This document shows, piece after piece, positions 35,801 to 64,000 of a stretch of DNA of 64,000 nt. Position numbers and translations under genes: made by a program. The notes beneath the pieces were generated by a model that was given only the letters and a program-made list of their open reading frames with translations, did no database searches and was not told where the DNA came from. Each line of letters starts with the position of its first letter. Positions within the stretch are counted from its first letter, which is position 1. The stretch is from Zygnema circumcarinatum SAG 698-1b (taxonomy: Eukaryota; Plantae; Zygnematophyceae). The DNA lies in the NCBI GenBank assembly GCA_037447605.1, contig CM074806.1:4340001-4404000 (forward strand), read 5' to 3'.

Positions 35801-38800
35801 GTATGTAGTGCCCTTCCCGACCCCAGCCAGAGGCTCCGCACGCATGTGGTCGCGGGAAGGCGGACCCTCAGCCCCGCCAAATTGGCGTGAAAGAACAGTT
35901 TAGCAAATGGACCTGCTGCCCGCCCCACCCACCGCACGGCCGCAGAAGTTGACTCCAGAGGAAATGGAGAAGATGCAGCGGGAGAACAAGTGTTTCCGCT
36001 GCCGCAAGGAGGGGCACAAGGCCCGGGATTGCCCTCTGAACACCAAGGACAAGAAGGGCAAGGGGCCGGAAAACCCCAACCCACCAGCAGCTTAGGGGTC
36101 GTTGTTGGTGGACATACTAGGCTAGGGGGAGGGAATGGGGCTGCCATCAAGGATAAAAGACTCTTGTTTCTTAGAACCCTGGACATTCTTAACTTGGTGG
36201 GCAGGCCTTTGGGAGTGCAAGATCTCTTTGTGTTTGATGTACTCCCTTCTTCCATTTCTCTCTCCCCTGCCACTGTAGTGACTCCTTCTGGGTTTATGGA
36301 TGTAGTGATGAATGGTGATTGGCATGTCTTTATCCTCAATGTCATGGGCGATGATGTTCTCATGCAATGTGCCATGGATGCTTTGCATGTCATGGGAAAC
36401 ACCTCCCATGTCCTTGGGCTGCATGTGCTGGTTCCTCAGCACATGGCAGTTCGCACCTTTCCCAACGCCACTTGGCGGTTGGTGAAACAGTTGAGGAAAG
36501 GGCACACGTTGGTGCAAGAGATGGAAGGATCCACCAGCTTGCTGGTTGGCTCACCCTACACATTGGTGTGGAGGACGACTCGTCCTCAACCTTCGCATAT
36601 AGTGCGATCTATGTTCCACCTTGCCCATCGTGCCATGACCTTCATCGGATCAGCCAATGGCCACCCAGCAGTTCTACTGCTAGATACTGGGGCAGATGCT
36701 AACTTTGTTAGTTCTGCGTTCACCCAGAGATTTGGGTTGACCACAGATCCCCATTCAGAAAGTGTTACTTTCGGGGATGGACGCAAGGGCCAGATCTCTG
36801 GTAGCGTCACACTCAAGATCAAGCTCCAATCCTACTCCGGGGCAGTCAAGTGTCTTCTAACACAACTGGCCCCTGGTACTGATGTTATTTTAGGGAGTGC
36901 TTGGTTAACCATGGTCAAGGCACAAATGGACTTTTCTGTCCCACATTGCATTCTGCACAGTGGTGACAGGCGGCTTACCCTGCACCCTGGCAGAGCCACA
37001 TCCGCTGCTATCAAGCAGCCTGCTACTCCTTATCTCTGCTCAGCTATGCAATTGGCCAAAGCAGTTAAGGAAGGTTGCACCTTGTTCATGGTGCATGTCA
37101 TGGCAGCCACTGAGGATGTTCATGACGAAGATCAGGAATGGCAGATCACATCTACGAATGTGCTCTCGGCCGTTCCACCCAAAATCCAACCTTTGTTGTA
37201 TGAGTTCAGGGATGTTTTCCCTGACGACCTTCCAAGAGGGTTGCCACCATCTAGAGGAGCGGGCACACAATCCTCTTGAGCTCTGAGCAAAGCCTTTGGC
37301 GTCATCTATATCGTGTTGGGGTTCAAAGAAACCGGTGAGACGCGAAAAGCAGTTGGCAACTTACGCGAAAAGGGCCGGGATAACTCAGTCAAAGCCCCTT
37401 GGGGCGCCCATCTTGTTTGTTGGGAAGAACGCATGGTTCGTTGAGGATGTGCATTGATTATCACAAGACCAACAAGATCACCCGCAAAGAACCGCTTGTT
37501 TTACTCACGTATTGATGATCTGTTGATCGTTTCACGGCGCCCTCGAAGTGTTTACTTCCCATCTTGCTCAGGGTACCATCGACCGTGTTACTGGCTGATG
37601 TGCCAAACCGCGCCTCCGACATTGGTCATTTCCAATATATAAGGTGTTGCCCTTGGATTGACTAATGCTCCGGCGACTTTCCAGGCTGTAATGAACGAAA
37701 TGTTCATCGGCATGGACGAGTTTGTTTTGGTTTACCTCGATGATATCCTTGTCTTCAGTAAGACAGAGGAGGAACATCTTGAACACGTTCGGAAAGTGTT
37801 TGAGACCCTGAGGAAACACCAATTTTATGCCAAGAGGAAGAAGTGTCACTTCATGCAACGTGAGTTGCTTTATCTTGGGCATATCTTGAATGAACAGGGC
37901 CTTCGGACTGATCCAGCCAAAGTTTCCGCTGTAGAAATCCTTATGCCACCGACCCACCCTCGGCACCAGTTGAGGTCTTTTCCTGGCTTTGCGAATTATT
38001 TTCAGAAGTTCATCCAAGGGTTTAGTAAACTGTTACCCCTTGACTAATTTGACACGCCTGCGTCCCTTACATGGACCCTCAATGCCGTGGATGTACCGGG
38101 TTGCGTGCGCCTATGCACTTGTTACCGCACCCACTCTCCGTTTAGCGGACCCGTCCAAACCTTATGAAGTGGTTTGTGATGCTTCGGGATTCGCCTTGGG
38201 TGCCGTCTTGTTTCAAGATGGTCAACCTCTGGCGTATGAAAGTCGCAAAATGAATCCCGCTGAGCGCAACTATTCTGCAACAGAACAGGAACTGCTTGCA
38301 GTGGTCCACGCCCTGAGGACATGGCGGTGCTATTTAGAGGGGGCGAAAGCGGTCACGCTGGTCACTGACCACCGCCCGCTGACGTTCCTCTCAACCCAAC
38401 ATACCTTGTCTAGGCGGCAGGCACGCTGGTCTGAGTTCCTCCAAAGGTTTGACTGCCAGTGGGTCTATCGGCCCGGAAGGCTGAATGTCGCAGACCCACT
38501 GAGTAGGCAGCCTCGGCATCTTGCCTGGATGGTGCGCTCGTCGACTCGAGTGTTGGTGGAACGAGATGACAGAGGTGAGGGGCCGGCCAACCCCGAGTCT
38601 CCGTCTCCAGTATGCTTTGTCATAGATCCCTCCACCAGTGACGCAGTCAACCCTCCTGCTCTCTCTGATCTCAGACAGATGATTCAGGAGGGGTATACTG
38701 GTGATCCTTTGTTCCTGGATGGCCAAGGAAATGGCTATAAGGACAAAGTGGTGTCTAAGGACGGATTCTGGTACCACGGCCAGCAGTTGGTCGTGCCCAA

Positions 38801-41084
38801 GGCCGGGACTGTACGGCAGCTCATTCTGGGTGAGCTACATGATCCTCCGTACCGAGGTCACATGGGAGTTGCCAAAACCCGTGAGGCACTGCTCCGAGAG
38901 TTCTGGTGGCCTGGACTCTCGAGGGATGTGAAAGCGTATGTACTCGCTTGTCCAACTTGTCAACGAAACAAACCCCGCACTGGCAGGATCCCTGGCCAGC
39001 TGCAACCCCTCACACCTCCTTTTCGGAAATGGGACAGTGTGGGTATGGATTCTGATCACGATCTCCTCGCGGACACCCTGGGCATGACTCCATCCCTCGC
39101 CTTTGTCGACGGCCGCCAGAAGATGGTGCATTTTGCACCAACTACTAAGACAGCTGGGGCCGACGAGATTGCACGGTTGTATGTTGACAAAGTGTGGAGC
39201 CGGCATGGTCTTCAGTCAGAAATTGTGTCTGACCGTGATCCACGATTCACCGGCCATTTTTGGACGGAAGTGCTCAAAATCGTTGGGACCAAGCAGGCGT
39301 TGAGTACAGCTTTCCACCCGCAAACCGATGGCCAGACGGAACGGGTGAACAGGATCCTGGAGGATTACCTCCGGCATTATGTGGGACCTACCCCGGATGG
39401 GTGGGACGAACTGCTCCCAGTGGCTGAGTATGCCATCAATAATGCTTTCCAGGAGTCCATTGGTACCACCCCCTTTCTTCTTGAACTTTGGCCAGCACCC
39501 CTAAATCCCCTGCAACCAAGGGATCAGCCCCCTGATCCGTGGAACATGGGCGTCCACAGAAACCCCGATCGTTGGAAGCTGAGAGGGACTGATGGGACTC
39601 AACCTCGCTAGCCGATCTTTTGTCCCACTAATGCCCCGAGGCGCCGCAGGGCACCTGCATTCCCCGCTAGCGCCCGCCGGGCGACATAAAAGGCCTATAT
39701 GTTGACCGCCAACAGACGCAACTCTACCTTCAACGGCGATGAGGTGTTGCTACAAGAAACTTGAGACTCAAAGCTTATGGCGGAACACGTAAGCTGTGGC
39801 CCCGCTTCATCGACCTTTCAGGGTCGGGAAGCGAATCAATGATGTCGCTTACAGGTTGGATTTACCATCCCACATGAAGGTGCATCCGGTCTTTCATGTG
39901 GGTTTGCTAAAGGTCTACCGTAGCGATGGGAGGATCCAACCACCTCCCCCACCAGTGGAACTTGAAGGTGAACTTGAGTATGAAGTTGAAACCATTCAAG
40001 CCCACCGTATTGTGAGAAAGGGTCGATCTTCCCGTCACGAAAACCTCGTGAAATGGTTGGGCTATGGGGTTGAACATATCACATGGGAAGCCGAGGGCAA
40101 CTTAACCAATTGCCGAGCTCATCAACTTGTACCGGAGGCTGGTGTGAGAGCTGGGCGCAGGGCGCACGTGGGGGTTCGCCGCCCCTCGCCGCTAACCTCG
40201 AAAGGGACTCTGACCGGGATTATCGCCGAGCCCCTCCCTAAGCATCACGAGTTCGGACGCCAGTCGCTGGAAACTACGAAATGCCATACTACCTTCACAC
40301 ACGCGAATCCAGGCCGCTCACATTCTCACAGGGAGTAATGTAGCCAAACGCTACAAATACCCCAAGGGGAAGGGTTACTTAGAGCCCGGCGTGGCTTTAT
40401 GTTTCCATCCAATGCAGTACCTAACGGTTAGAGCATCGGATACCCTATAGGACGACGGAGGTCCTAGGTTCGAACCTTAAGAACTGGTTCACCAGTGGGG
40501 CCGCCACATAATCTCTATGGGCCCCACATCAACTGCCAAGGTCCCCTCCTCTCAGCGTAGAGGAGGATCACGGATCAACGGCACCACGCGACCAACTGTG
40601 TTCGCTGATTGATCTCGTCCGCTGCCCGATCCCCCTTTTGATTCTGTTCGCCGGGTCCGCATAATAACGGTTACCCGCTGGTAATGCGACAAGCTTCGAT
40701 GGGCCGGACTCTCGCATCACGCGTAGGTTTTCACTGGCACTCTACGGGCATTTCTGGCTGCGCCTGCCGCGGGCGCCGCTGAATGCGGGCGTAGCACTCA
40801 GATAAGCAGGCCACCTCTCACCCATTCGGAAGCCGAGGAACACGCGGCGGGTCCGGGCTATTGGATGTGCCTCGCCGCTTTCCAATCCTCCATGCCGGGT
40901 AGGAGGTTCTGGACGGGAAGCTGGGCGTGGGTGACCTGCCGTTACCCAACCAACGTATCGGGTATTCCGGGTTGTGCACCCTCGCCGGCCGCGCCACTCT
41001 CCTCTCAAGCTCTCCTGTTTCTGAACTCGAAAGTGCTGGTGTGTGATTCCGCGCAGGCTGAAGAGGCGGTTTTCAGTCGTTACA
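32890..41084 (+). mobile_element. Near full-length Ty3/Gypsy chromovirus (type-B LTRs), frameshifted
   Basis: 5' LTR to 34542, then PBS-like TTGGTATCGAGGCC. Gag zinc knuckle CFRCRKEGHKARDC (~35990-36030), protease LLDTGADANFV (~36675), RT YLDDILVFS (~37730), RNase H VVCDASG/ELLAVVHAL, integrase IVSDRDPRF/AFHPQTDGQTER, chromodomain EYEVETIQAH...VKWLGYG (~39980-40130), PPT GGGAGTAA, 3' LTR 40339-41084. Confidence 0.92.
33175..34141 (+). mobile_element. Solo LTR (Copia-like TGTTAG family) inserted in the chromovirus 5' LTR
   Basis: TGTTAG...CCAACA, 967 bp, flanked by a perfect GTCCG duplication (33170-33174 and 34142-34146). The host LTR sequence resumes on both sides, as in the uninterrupted copy near 40650. 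Confidence 0.9.
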
Positions 41085-59710: not shown

Positions 59711-60207
59711 TAGTCGGGGGTCCTCGTATTTACCGCCCTGAGGAGTGCGTCCCCAAGAATTTCGCCCCGATTTTGCCGAAACCACCTTTTTGTACGGTAA
59801 CTTCGTATTACCGTACTGTTCGTACTGTCCGTACTGTCCGTACCGTTACTGTACTAGCCGTTACGGGCTTTCGCAAAACTCACCTAATCTCCCCGCACGT
59901 GCCGCCGTAAGAGGCGCTCGCTCTTCTCCCCTTCTTCTTGGCTTCGATACGAAAGGATATGATACGGTACGATACGGTACGAAACGAACCGCCCCGATAC
60001 GGTACTATCCGTACAAATCATACGAGCTGTAGTGGTCGATATAATACGATACGGTACGATATAGTACGGTACGATACGTACGGTCCAACATTAACTCTAA
60101 CATAATACCGCCCGTCTATTGCTAACACGAACCTTATATATGCAAAATCAATATTTTCGCCTCATATTGGCCAAAACCAGGGTGGAAAATATGAGGACCC
60201 CTGACTG
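59711..60207. mobile_element. MITE, probably Tc1/mariner-like
   Basis: 30-bp TIRs TAGTCGGGGGTCCTCGTATTTACCGCCCTG (59711-59740) and CAGGGTGGAAAATATGAGGACCCCTGACTG (60178-60207) with 5 mismatches. TA follows the right end, GA precedes the left. The interior has inverted CCGTAC / GTACGG / GATACGGTAC micro-repeats and no transposase. Confidence 0.75.
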
Positions 60208-60561
60208 TACATAGAGCGACATGATTCGTTGCGACAACATGTGACATGATACACTAAGTTTGCCATGTTCACCATGCATCCATCCATGGCTTTCTTGGAA
60301 CAATGACCACGCTCAAATTGAATAAATACATACATGAAAAGCAAATTCCAGTCACCATCTGGTTCATCCCCCCTGCGCGGATCTCCCCTCCCCCTCCAAT
60401 TCACCATTGCCCCCTCTCTGCCTGCTTGCTCGCTGCACCGCTGCCTTCTCTGTTCTGCGCACTCCTTCCTTTCACACACCGACTCGTAGAGGTAAGCCAT
60501 GTTTTCTTCTTTGCTTATTTTTGCCGTTCTAAGCCCTTCGCTTCGTTGCAACTTAACTTCG

Positions 60562-61360
60562 CTACATGAGTGTGCGCCTCTCGCCGCGGACCACGGCGTA
60601 GGACTTTCCCGGGGCGATGAAGTCGGTGGTCCGGTGCAGGTGCTGCTCGGAGGCGGGGACCTGAAGGAGAGGGAGAGGGAGAGGGAGAGGGAGAGGGAGA
60701 GGTAGGGAGGGAGCGTCAGAGCGCTGTTGGCTTCATGGGGGAGGGAGAGGGCAGGGTAGGGTAGGAGGGCGTGGTTTGGGGGGCGTGGGAGGGAGTGAAG
60801 TACAGAAAAAATGAGGGGAGAGAGAGAGAGAGAGAGTGCGAGGTATAGAAGGGGGGTCAGAGGGGAAGAGGGAGAGAGATAGAGAGGGGGAGAGAGAGCG
60901 CATATCACCTCACGGTCCGAATGGATTTGCACACCAGTAATGACAGCATAGTCCTCCTTGTGTGGGTCAACGGTTTTATTAATGAGCTTTTCGAGATCGT
61001 TCAAGATTGCCTGCGCGCAGAGAGAACCGATGAGTGACGGAAGGAGTAGCCATTGCAGGAGACATAGCCATGGACGCACCTCGAGTATGTTCTGTCATCT
61101 GATGTAATCCCCGCATTTTTTCTGCGACAGTGAAATCTGCATCGGCTTCTTTTCAGAGGTTTCTGTCTCCTCTCCCTCTCCCTCTCCCTCTCCATCTCTC
61201 CATTGCATCTTTCAGCAGGATATCAATGTTGTCCAAGCAGAGATCAAGAATCTAATATGAGGATGCCAACTGCAGAAGGCATCTTTTCCAAGGATCACAG
61301 TACTGTACTGTTCTGCAGTATTATGATATCAACGTCAACATCTCCATCTTTCCCCCCCCT

Positions 61361-61425
<65 letters not shown>

Positions 61426-62966
61426 CTCTCTCTCTCCCTCTCTCCCTCTTCATCGACATGAACATCACATAACATCTGGCAACCAACATCAACCTTTGGT
61501 TGGCACCATTGTTACTGTAGACTTTCCAAACTCCACATGGAACATTCGACGCTTGACAATATGTTCCACTCTCTGCAAGTGAAGCATGCGCATTTTCCAA
61601 TTCACAGTATCGTAAAAATTCAAATCGAAGAGATTGGAACTTTACCGCATAGGCGGCCACTGTCAGTGTTAAAAGAGACGGCTGCTTTATCTCGCCAATC
61701 TGCAAAGAATAACAAAAAACACGACAAAATATTCAACCCTCAGAAACGGAATCAAAGAGCCCTAAACAAAATGCAGACGATCCATCCTCAACCCTCAACC
61801 CTAAGACTAGTCAATTCAGATTCTCCCCAAGTGCTCTTTTAGGGTTTCTTTCTTCTCACCTGCTTTATGACCTTCTCCTTCAAAGCTGTGTACTCTATCC
61901 CCTCCTCCTCAGCTGCAGATCGGAGCGAGCCTTTCCAAATGTCGTTCTTTATAGCAATGAGTGCTCCACAAGCATCAGATGGCTTTCCATGAACTCCCCG
62001 AAGCAGTGAACCTATCTTGTCTCCACTAACCGCAAGATGAGGGAATACGAAGAAAATATCTGTTGTTTGAGGCAAACAAAACATCAATCAAATATGACTT
62101 TCAGATGCAGAACAGGTCTGAGGGTTTGCGGAGAGTTTCAGGAGTTCATCCTTTGAGAGATGTGAATGAATGGAAAGCTTGTGTTCAGATGAAGGATGTG
62201 AAGGGGAAGCTTTTTTCGGTTTGCAGATGAAACTTACACTTGGGACGAGTATCGCCGGACTCAATTTCAGGCGGAGGGCAATGCGATATTCCGGCTCTAA
62301 GCCCCTTCTCGCCGCAGCTAAGGACCCCCCCCAGACCGGAAATGCTGAAGATTGAACCGAACTGCTTACTGATAAGAGTCTCAAGGGGGCGGCAAAGCTG
62401 CACATTCGTCAAACAGCACAAGGAAGGGTTCAGTTTCTAGATTATTAGTTTTTTATTAGTTTTTTTCAGGCTATTTGAAGGGGGATTATTTGGTACATCC
62501 GTCTGCAAGATTTCTTCAGGGGATGTGAATGTTATTCAGTCAAGAGTTTCGCAAGTTAGGATGTTGTACCTCATCACGACAAGTGCCAACCAGCGGTATG
62601 CAGTTGCCCCTGCAGGGAGAAGTCGGAGTAAAAAAAGAAGAATTAGTGATAGACATTTCGGGTAGAAAGCGGCTCCATGCAAAACATTCTGATAACCAAC
62701 AACTCTGCAACTTTAGCTGCTAAGAGGCTATCAGGATTATAGGGTTTCCAGAGTATCCCCTCAATTTGGGTTCTAAAGGGTTTTCCAGCTCACTTTTTGA
62801 ATCCGAATCCGGCCAGCACTCTGCCACACGTGTGAATAAACTCTTTCGCTCCGACTACCTCCTTGCTGGAAGAGTTTACACGTGTTAAGAGATATTCTTG
62901 AGCCCATCGTGGCACGAAATCTGCAGAATCTGTTTGAGTTGGCGAGTGACTGATGCTCAAGTCCAT
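60562..62966 (-). CDS. LCIB: LCIB/LCIC-family (limiting-CO2-inducible) theta/beta-type carbonic anhydrase-like protein, 7 exons, 275 aa
   Basis: Exons 62966-62794, 62609-62570, 62397-62238, 62059-61860, 61699-61646, 61010-60909, 60660-60562, all GT-AG, total 828 nt in frame. Protein has LAGFGFKKGNCIPLVGTCRDELC, FSISGLGGVLSCG, AGISHCP, KYIFFVFPHLAV, DACGALIA, DLEKLINKTVDP..DYAVITGVQIH and FIAPGKSYAVVRG, matching the LCIB core as I recall it. Confidence 0.9.
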
Positions 62967-63599
62967 GTCTGGATTAAGAAAAAGGCGATGAAATCCGGCG
63001 AGGTTAGGTCAGCCAGGTTTGATCAATTCCAGTTCAAGCTCTGAGGAGTTCAGTCCCTTCTGAACAGCAGTCAGAAACCCAATGCGTGTTGGAATAAGAT
63101 GGGAGCAAGAGAGGGTCGGAGAAGGAACAGCTCCAAAAGGAAAGTTTCTACCGGAACATGCTGTGGTCGGGACAGAAGCTCACCAAGGGGACCCAATATC
63201 GATCGATATCAGAGGACAACCTTACGAAAATGCGCTACCAATTCAAGTTAATTCTTGCACCAAACATCCACAATCAAGGAGCAACCTGAATTCTCATTCA
63301 TACAGTGAAGAGGTGACGAGCGAATCCAAATTTTATTGATAAGTGCGGCTGTCGCTTTTCAAGAGGTCCCCCCTCAAATGGTACACCTCCTCAATCCCAG
63401 CACTCCAGCCATTCCTTCCCCCTCTACACAATATCAATATATCACATAACCACGTATCTTCTCTACCTTCTTCCCCTCATCAAGAAGCTTTCTCCACACA
63501 TGTACTCAGAAAGAAGAGCACTCATAAATTACATCACAATCTGTAAAAACTAAACTTGCTATACCACTCTGACGTCGACCTTTCCTCGAGCTCTCCAAT

Positions 63600-64000
63600 T
63601 TACGCAGCATGGATAAGGCGAGTAGCTCGCGGAATCGACCCACCGCCAGCATTCGCCGTTCCATGCTCCGTTGCTCCATTCGCAACTGTAGCCGCTGCCG
63701 CCTTCCCTTTCACTTCCCTTGCAGCCGCATGCACGGCCTGCCCCTCATTGGCTGCCGCCGCCGGTAGTAGCCCCATTTGAGCGAGCCATGCCGGCGGCTC
63801 GATGCCGGTCTGATCCTGAATTGTGCTCAGAAGGGGAGGGAGCGACTGGATGAAGTCTTGGAAGGGGTGGGCGGTCGAAGGCGTCGAGGAATCGCCGCCC
63901 GTCGTCCAAACGTTGATTTTAGGGTTGATGCCCTGCACCGCGTCCGCGCTACATTTGGCGAGTTCGCTGAAGAGCCCGCGTTCGATCATGAGGTATTGCA
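63600..64000 (-). CDS. FLOT: Flotillin-like (SPFH) protein, C-terminal exon; gene continues beyond the window
   Basis: QYLMIERGLFSELAKCSADAVQGINPKINVWTTGG...SLPPLLSTIQDQTGIEPPAWL matches the plant flotillin C-terminus; TAA at 63600-63602. Confidence 0.88.
   Translation of the reverse strand, partial: QYLMIERGLFSELAKCSADAVQGINPKINVWTTGGDSSTPSTAHPFQDFIQSLPPLLSTIQDQTGIEPPAWLAQMGLLPAAAANEGQAVHAAAREVKGKAAAATVANGATEHGTANAGGGSIPRATRLIHAA

Follow-up and report, generated by a model that had tools for sequence, protein, structure and literature searches.

An LCIB-Family Carbonic Anhydrase Gene in Zygnema circumcarinatum

The 64,000-nucleotide (nt) stretch of Zygnema circumcarinatum SAG 698-1b analysed here (assembly GCA_037447605.1, contig CM074806.1, positions 4,340,001 to 4,404,000, hereafter the window) very probably carries a functional, transcribed nuclear gene for a streptophyte, zygnematophycean-type zinc carbonic anhydrase (CA) of the LCIB family. 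The gene lies on the minus strand between 62966 and 60562, an interval whose DNA holds no long open reading frame (ORF) as it stands, and its exon structure, its splicing, its family membership and the conservation of a Cys-His-Cys set together with Asp70, Arg145 and His110 were demonstrated by the placement of RNA contigs and by comparison with profiles, solved structures and homologous proteins.

Gene Structure and Splicing

Seven minus-strand exons, read from 62966 down to 60562, join into 828 nt that encode 275 amino acids (aa) without an internal stop, and the six introns between them, with lengths of 184, 172, 178, 160, 635 and 248 nt, are all of the GT..AG type. Four public RNA runs of this organism (X1, X2, X3 and X6) supplied contigs that were placed on positions 60000–64000; five of the six junctions correspond to listed joints in all four runs, all of them CT..AC on the plus strand, and the sixth, 60909|60660, is carried by contig 23 of X6 and by a loose end of X1. 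The absence of this last junction from the joint list is explained by a 2-nt ambiguity and a masked microsatellite. The seven exons and the 275-aa product, which the initial annotation had predicted from the DNA alone, were thereby borne out in every detail, as the RNA uses exactly the predicted junctions.

Exon 1 (62968–62794, coding from 62966 to 62794) encodes residues 1–57 plus 2 nt, in phase 2; its start at 62968 is set by a splice acceptor, its ATG occupies 62966–62964 in the context CCAGACATGG, and its RNA joints are 62608/62793 (cut +1) and 62968/63644. Exon 2 (62609–62570, 40 nt) encodes KGNCIPLVGTCRDE with Cys68, Arg69 and Asp70 in the motif GTCRDE and has joints in all four runs, and exon 3 (62397–62238, 160 nt), likewise with RNA joints, contains the GLGG motif and His110. 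Exon 4 (62059–61860, 200 nt) contains His132 in FPHLAV, Arg145, and Cys155 in DACGAL; exon 5 (61699–61646, 54 nt) is delimited by the joints 61699/61860 and 61009/61645 (cut +1) in all four runs; and exon 6 (61010–60909, 102 nt), with the motif DYAVITGVQIH, is also supported by RNA. The coding part of exon 7 (60660–60562) ends with a TAG at 60564–60562, again on contig 23 of X6 and the loose end of X1, and is followed by a 3′ untranslated region (UTR) of about 170–190 nt at 60561–60369, reached by contig 23 of X6 (to 60369) and contig 15 of X3 (to 60397). An exon-like ORF at 61574–61494, considered as an eighth exon, was rejected, since the RNA skips it and joins 61646 straight to 61010, and the count of seven exons is correct.

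Introns 5 and 6 are filled with dense purine/pyrimidine microsatellites, (GAGAGG)n and (CT)n with variants, and the stretches 60670–60900, 61160–61200 and 61340–61450 were masked in read placement and show an RNA depth of zero. Run X1 also contains a plus-strand GT..AG joint from 60489 to 61057 (depth 18.7) and low-depth contigs at 61057–61158 and 61205–61324; this plus-strand signal at 60489–61324 looks like a weak spliced antisense transcript over the end of the gene, covering its 3′ UTR as well as its last exons and introns. Just downstream of the 3′ end, a short tandem-like repeat rich in TACGGTACGATA units was observed at 59745–60110.

Family Membership and Active Site

Assignment to the LCIB/LCIC family, proposed earlier from motifs, holds, as three exons independently pass the profile cut-off. 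When the exons were translated and scored separately against the Pfam profile LCIB_C_CA (PF18599; curated cut-off 25 bits), exon 3 reached 35.3 bits at profile positions 37–77, exon 4 reached 27.7 bits at positions 82–158 and exon 6 reached 30.2 bits at positions 176–208, each above the cut-off on its own and all collinear along the profile, a pattern far beyond chance. Exon 3 matches the solved chain of Chlamydomonas LCIB (CrLCIB; PDB 5k5w) at E 1.8e-7, exon 4 matches both 5k5w and the LCIC chain 5b5x, with FPH and ACGAL aligned to 5k5w, and an exhaustive HMMER search with exon 4 returned 30 cluster representatives, the best at 49–57% identity. The whole 275-aa protein aligns by blastp with dozens of LCIB homologues over 235–265 aa at E 1e-78 to 1e-67, and with PF18599 proteins of Netrium, Mesotaenium and Closterium over 239–257 aa at E 1e-78 and 48–53% identity; a second search recovered Mesotaenium endlicherianum, Netrium digitus, many Closterium paralogues and Klebsormidium nitens, followed by chlorophyte LCIBs, all of them PF18599 proteins. 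The hidden Markov model built from the LCIB domain, with the query itself among its members, spans residues 17–275. Membership of the LCIB/LCIC (PF18599) family is thus supported by sequence comparison, and the homology to the solved chains 5k5w and 5b5x points to a beta-CA-like fold for the 275-aa protein; theta-CAs are a structural subgroup of the beta-CAs.

The residues expected of an active site are also preserved. Cys68, Arg69, Asp70, Glu71, His110, His132, Arg145 and Cys155 occupy invariant columns in an alignment of 14 diverse LCIBs, which agrees with the earlier claims that all three zinc ligands (Cys68, His132 and Cys155) and the Arg-Asp pair typical of this family (Arg69 and Asp70) are present; the LCIB profile is matched, and the transcript junctions keep the Cys and His ligands in the protein. 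Following the LCIB family literature, we take Cys68, His132 and Cys155 to be the metal ligands. These three correspond to Cys120, His180 and Cys204 of Chlamydomonas incerta LCIB. In the same C. incerta protein (448 aa), the counterparts of His110 and Arg145 are residues 162 and 194, positions described as key for active-site integrity by Jin et al. 2016, as relayed in a review (PMC5876011). Across 59 other LCIB domains, 49 columns show a conservation of 90% or more, and the 275-aa protein retains 46 of them.

Descent and Relatives

A maximum-likelihood tree of 60 LCIB domains, with ultrafast bootstrap and Shimodaira–Hasegawa-like approximate likelihood-ratio supports, placed the protein as sister to the Mesotaenium LCIB (96/85) within a zygnematophycean group (94/95) that is separate from the clade of chlorophytes and Mesostigma. 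Sequence identities fall from 48% with Mesotaenium to 39.5% with K. nitens, 37–38% with Chlamydomonas-type proteins and 32.5% with the haptophyte Pavlova. Exon structures of the K. nitens LCIB (KFL_002100040, P0082) and of a Closterium LCIB were recovered from their genomic loci. Four of the six introns share position and phase with K. nitens, namely those after residues 57 (phase 2), 124 (phase 1), 191 (phase 0) and 209 (phase 0); a fifth, in a gapped region, is off by no more than one residue (243 against 244), and the remaining one is shifted (71 against 82). At the position of exon 4, K. nitens likewise has an exon of 200 nt with identical borders, and the single intron of the Closterium gene equals intron 3 of the window gene in site and phase. 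The introns common to Klebsormidium support vertical inheritance and, together with the zygnematophycean nearest homologues, confirm the streptophyte affinity initially suggested; on its tree position and intron pattern the gene is a streptophyte LCIB that was inherited vertically and evolves fast; it is not a contaminant and not a relic.

The closest proteins, from M. endlicherianum (ME000627S08833, P0003), N. digitus and Closterium spp., share the same motifs, and their identity of 48–53% extends over the whole domain; they differ from the visible window protein in having a transit-peptide-like start, a FASVSQ motif and a hydrophobic helix, and in running 11–19 residues past the domain, where the window protein has none. 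K. nitens LCIB, the copy from a streptophyte alga that the hornwort genome paper used (PMC8075897), belongs to the same family and, unlike the window protein, has 205 residues before the domain, among them a hydrophobic helix, and a tail of 30 residues. Chlamydomonas LCIB and LCIC (5K5W and 5B5X) have the zinc ligands and the His162/Arg194 equivalents in common with the window protein, so that the same chemistry would be expected; these proteins fall in the chlorophyte-type clade, whereas the window protein groups with the zygnematophycean one. Tails of about 106–116 residues are found in the Chlamydomonas-group LCIBs of the alignment, and CrLCIB acts in a complex with its paralogue LCIC, whereas the window protein stands outside the LCIB/LCIC clade and has no C-terminal extension.

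Two further systems are likened to the window protein through the literature. Hornwort (Anthoceros) LCIB, according to PMC8075897 the one LCIB of land plants, conserves the zinc and catalytic residues and has been placed at the chloroplast envelope (bioRxiv 10.1101/2024.06.26.600872); no hornwort sequence was found among the search matches. The diatom theta-CA (an LCIB-type protein of Phaeodactylum) shares the domain family and the zinc-site logic (PMC7215798) and is reported in the thylakoid lumen of a secondary plastid; Pavlova is the only secondary-plastid alga in the alignment.

Protein Ends

When read from its own ATG, the 275-aa form lacks a transit peptide, a hydrophobic helix at the N-terminus and any C-terminal extension: it ends at the last residue of the domain, where homologues run 11–116 residues further (11–30 in streptophytes and 106–116 in the Chlamydomonas group). 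All homologues carry 110–210 residues before the LCIB domain, and a pre-domain helix with a Kyte-Doolittle value of 1.6–2.1 over 19 residues was observed in Mesotaenium, Netrium, Closterium, K. nitens and Mesostigma. The N-termini of streptophyte LCIBs (P0003, P0041, P0033, P0037, P0082 and P0014) share a transit-like start, FASVSQ, a helix LGAGALGAAxY and the motif (G)IVPRAK; this Gly/Ala-rich pre-domain helix could be the membrane anchor behind the envelope localisation in hornworts.

The Upstream Exon and Alternative 5′ Processing

An upstream exon lies on the minus strand from 63644 to beyond 64000, with an ORF open over 118 codons and a donor at 63644/63643. A GT..AG joint connects 63644 to 62968 in runs X1 (depth 126) and X2 (depth 14), on contigs 6, 14 and 22; it is in frame, in phase 1, with G and AC combining into an Asp codon (...TANAG-D-MDLSIS...), and its acceptor, TCGCCTTTTTCTTAATCCAG|AC, is strong and lies 2 nt before the ATG. 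Upstream transcript contigs extend at least 1,033–1,124 nt past the window end, which gives at least 1,481 nt before the donor. The stretch 63643–62969 on the same strand is alternatively processed, being an intron in the fused form and unspliced in contigs X1-5, X2-13, X3-21, X3-22 and X6-26. When it is unspliced, the upstream ORF ends at a TAA at 63602–63600; an AATAAA occurs at 63337–63332, and a contig ends 13 nt after it, at 63324, near which a poly(A) site is likely. The gene model is therefore open at its 5′ end, and the 275-aa protein may not be the whole product.

The 275-aa protein could be complete as it stands, a cytosolic LCIB-type CA transcribed from its own promoter just upstream of exon 1, with the joint to the upstream exon as read-through noise; this reading is plausible, though it falls somewhat short of probable. 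The LCIB contig of X3 begins at 63213, below a 110-nt coverage gap (63214–63323) that directly follows the AATAAA-linked contig end, a scan for upstream start codons and signals found a single upstream ORF of 3 codons between 63213 and the ATG, and the ATG itself stands in good context (A at −3, G at +4). According to the run index, the LCIB stretch is present in six runs; X10–X14 contain 100% of the words of the upstream exon and yet are not listed for the LCIB stretch, these being index listings and not placed reads. This suggests independent expression of the upstream unit and LCIB expression that differs between samples and seems to depend on conditions. The N-terminus, with 5 acidic and 3 basic residues in the first 40 aa, is moreover unlike the transit peptides of the homologues. 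On the other side, this reading makes it a coincidence that the joint keeps the frame and uses a strong acceptor 2 nt ahead of the start codon, nearly all compared family members carry an N-terminal pre-sequence, and contig ends at about 9× depth are weak evidence for a transcription start. All exon-1 coverage in X1, too, lies on a contig that carries the spliced joint, and no X1 contig covers 62969–63028.

Alternatively, and as a tentative possibility, the LCIB domain could be the C-terminal module of a larger fusion with the upstream gene, made by regulated alternative splicing from 63644 to 62968 in competition with the intronic stop and poly(A) signal, the N-terminal part supplying targeting or a partner activity. 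The phase and position of the joint and the spliced exon-1 contig of X1 favour such a fusion, as do the donor depths in that run, where 126 for the spliced and 219 for the unspliced form add up to roughly the upstream depth of 318. It would also agree with the length of the transcript contigs beyond the window, seen beside the 110–210 pre-domain residues of the homologues, with the bestrophin-LCIB fusions known in Dunaliella and Micractinium, and with the two- and three-domain LCIBs of Mesostigma, Micractinium, Chlorella ohadii and a pedinophyte. However, a 1,649-nt contig of X6 runs unspliced from 63959 through exon 6, the X3 contigs are unspliced as well with no 63644/62968 joint among them, the X3 gap just after the AATAAA resembles a border between two transcription units, and the upstream exon is present in X10–X14, runs not listed for the LCIB stretch.

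Similarity searches with the upstream exon also speak against a fusion. No match was found in Pfam, PDB or the ESM Atlas; against a profile of 121 LCIB domain ends it scored no better than shuffles; and it showed no similarity to the linkers of bestrophin-LCIB fusions. Likeness to LCIB N-termini was not significant either: a profile of the pre-domain region gave p of about 0.02 for the unspliced ORF only, the spliced form being not significant. The exon was considered as the zygnematophycean pre-domain region, on a likeness (LLPA...GIVPRAK) suggested by BLAST without composition correction, and this was rejected, as was an internal duplication behind two 'PR(A/W)' segments, since neither DNA nor translated self-similarity was detected between 63560–64000 and 62700–63559.

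A regulated fusion and two adjacent genes with some read-through splicing are about equally probable. The locus gives rise to at least two mRNA forms: one in which the LCIB exons are spliced in frame to the upstream exon and gain an N-terminal extension, and another in which the intron stays unspliced, so that translation of the 275-aa ORF could begin only at its own ATG, most plausibly in an mRNA starting near 63213. With two mRNA forms and a true N-terminus that may lie beyond the window, the enzyme may act in the plastid or in the cytosol. Less likely is that the LCIB CA is a switchable C-terminal module of a constitutive upstream gene, which either ends at 63600 and about 63324 or conditionally splices onto LCIB; a conditional fusion of this kind would place CA activity wherever the upstream protein resides and would parallel, at the level of splicing, the hard-wired fusions (bestrophin-LCIB and tandem LCIB) of other green algae.

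A separate divergence was observed at 63930 in run X6. A contig found only in this run shares 63930–64000 with the window and then continues for 255 nt that are absent from the whole window, in frame (...AVQG|PLRGQLFERG), and the depth falls from about 1,810 to 835 at this point. The 30-nt loose end of X6 at 63930 was located nowhere in the window, so that a distant exon within the window was ruled out; the upstream gene may have a paralogue, or X6 may be a strain with a structural variant.

Catalytic Function

By analogy with the characterised proteins of the family, the gene product would bind zinc and interconvert CO2 and bicarbonate: Cys68, His132 and Cys155 would hold the metal in a beta-type fold, and Asp70 and Arg145 would tune the zinc-bound water for reversible CO2 hydration. 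In Chlamydomonas, and probably in hornworts, LCIB traps CO2 as bicarbonate in this way for a biophysical CO2-concentrating mechanism (CCM) or for the recycling of inorganic carbon. Chlamydomonas LCIB/LCIC convert CO2 to bicarbonate in the stroma and recapture leaked CO2 (PMC10473226), and a similar trapping role at the envelope has been proposed for hornworts (bioRxiv 10.1101/2024.06.26.600872).

Several observations weigh against an active CA with this role. Three conserved positions are changed in the window protein (A63P, E123P and R148H), with His at position 148 against Arg in 93% of the relatives, and the terminal branch, at 1.56, is about seven times as long as the median (0.21). A review of Jin et al. 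(PMC5876011) states that CrLCIB and LCIC showed no activity in vitro as recombinant proteins, and conserved residues alone are therefore no guarantee of catalysis. A plastid CCM role draws no support from targeting signals visible in the window: the start of the 275-aa form is acidic and not transit-like, and the part of the upstream exon within the window contains no hydrophobic helix (maximum Kyte-Doolittle 0.79 against 1.6–2.1 in the homologues), although the RNA shows further coding sequence upstream.

Taken together, the long branch, the changed positions, including R148H next to the active-site Arg, the in vitro inactivity reported for the recombinant proteins and the missing targeting signal would suit a non-catalytic LCIB-like protein that keeps the fold and the zinc site in a structural or regulatory role, or that is drifting after duplication. 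This is nevertheless improbable, as the eight metal-site and catalytic residues are intact, nearly all conserved columns are kept, and the ORF is unbroken over seven exons that are correctly spliced at good depth; moreover, Kasili et al. 2023 (cited in PMC10473226) are reported to have found LCIB acting as a CA in mutants of yeast and Arabidopsis. A functional zinc CA remains the favoured reading of the gene.

Least probable of all is a tandem arrangement like that of Mesostigma viride Mv11663, a pseudo-dimer in which the gene would supply the second of two LCIB domains and the first would lie just beyond the window: the length of transcript before the donor would have room for one LCIB domain and a pre-sequence, another streptophyte alga has LCIBs with two domains, and a faint collinear likeness to Mesostigma can be traced (LAKCSADAVQG against APCSAYAVING; TIQDQTGIEPPA against TIQVASTVPPPA), but the BLAST matches have E values of 30–70, the profile of domain ends does not separate the upstream exon from shuffled sequence, the Mesostigma domains fall in the chlorophyte-type clade, and no long LCIB protein from this genome was found among the search matches.

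Linked Genes, Multi-Domain LCIBs and Other Features of the Window

LCIB genes are associated with bestrophins in other genomes. On the K. nitens scaffold DF237159.1 (1–8181) the LCIB gene and a Bestrophin_2 (PF25539) gene stand head to head, about 1.5 kb apart, and bestrophin-LCIB fusions are annotated in Dunaliella salina, Micractinium conductrix and a JGI contig (P0183, P0170 and P0184). From the K. nitens gene pair and these fusions it follows that several green lineages have a physical link between two parts of the proposed minimal CCM chassis. LCIBs with two domains, in one case with three, were found in Mesostigma viride (P0014 and P0156) and in Micractinium, Chlorella ohadii, a pedinophyte and environmental contigs (with P0155, P0157, P0158, P0159 and P0016). 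The domains within each such protein are usually mutual closest relatives, which suggests repeated independent tandem duplications, and tandem domains fit the dimeric unit of beta-type CAs.

Elsewhere in the window, ORFs with aspartyl protease, reverse transcriptase–RNase H and integrase zinc-finger domains on the plus strand at 35990–39608 indicate a Ty3/gypsy retroelement. Eight other long ORFs of the window (803, 477, 404, 370, 332, 275, 209 and 180 aa) gave no Pfam match.

Significance for CCM Evolution

A minimal biophysical CCM chassis is considered to comprise LCIB, a bestrophin channel and a lumenal CA, and the patchy occurrence of LCIB in K. nitens and hornworts has been used as an argument for such a chassis in the land-plant ancestor (PMC8075897; bioRxiv 10.1101/2024.06.26.600872). 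The presence of LCIB in K. nitens and hornworts and its loss elsewhere in land plants were published in 2020 (PMC8075897). In public protein sets, LCIB_C_CA proteins of zygnematophycean algae (Mesotaenium, Netrium and Closterium) already number in the dozens, and the overall picture is therefore unchanged by one more. The initial annotation had seen in the gene a bearing on how CCM parts were kept or lost near the origin of land plants; the intact streptophyte copy stands, and the significance was overstated, as such LCIBs were already published or in databases. No protein of this genome for the LCIB gene was found in two large protein searches (219–698 and 476–1515 aa) or in a representative library, the best identity being 57% over exon 4; the gene may be unannotated, absence from these searches being no proof.

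The gene adds a transcript-verified copy, with its catalytic residues intact, that groups with the algae closest to land plants. What goes beyond the ordinary is only its divergence, its stripped-down architecture and its alternative 5′ splicing: a divergent LCIB without the usual pre-sequence, helix and tail would offer a natural minimal-core LCIB for enzymology, and the 5′ architecture may represent a fusion made by splicing.

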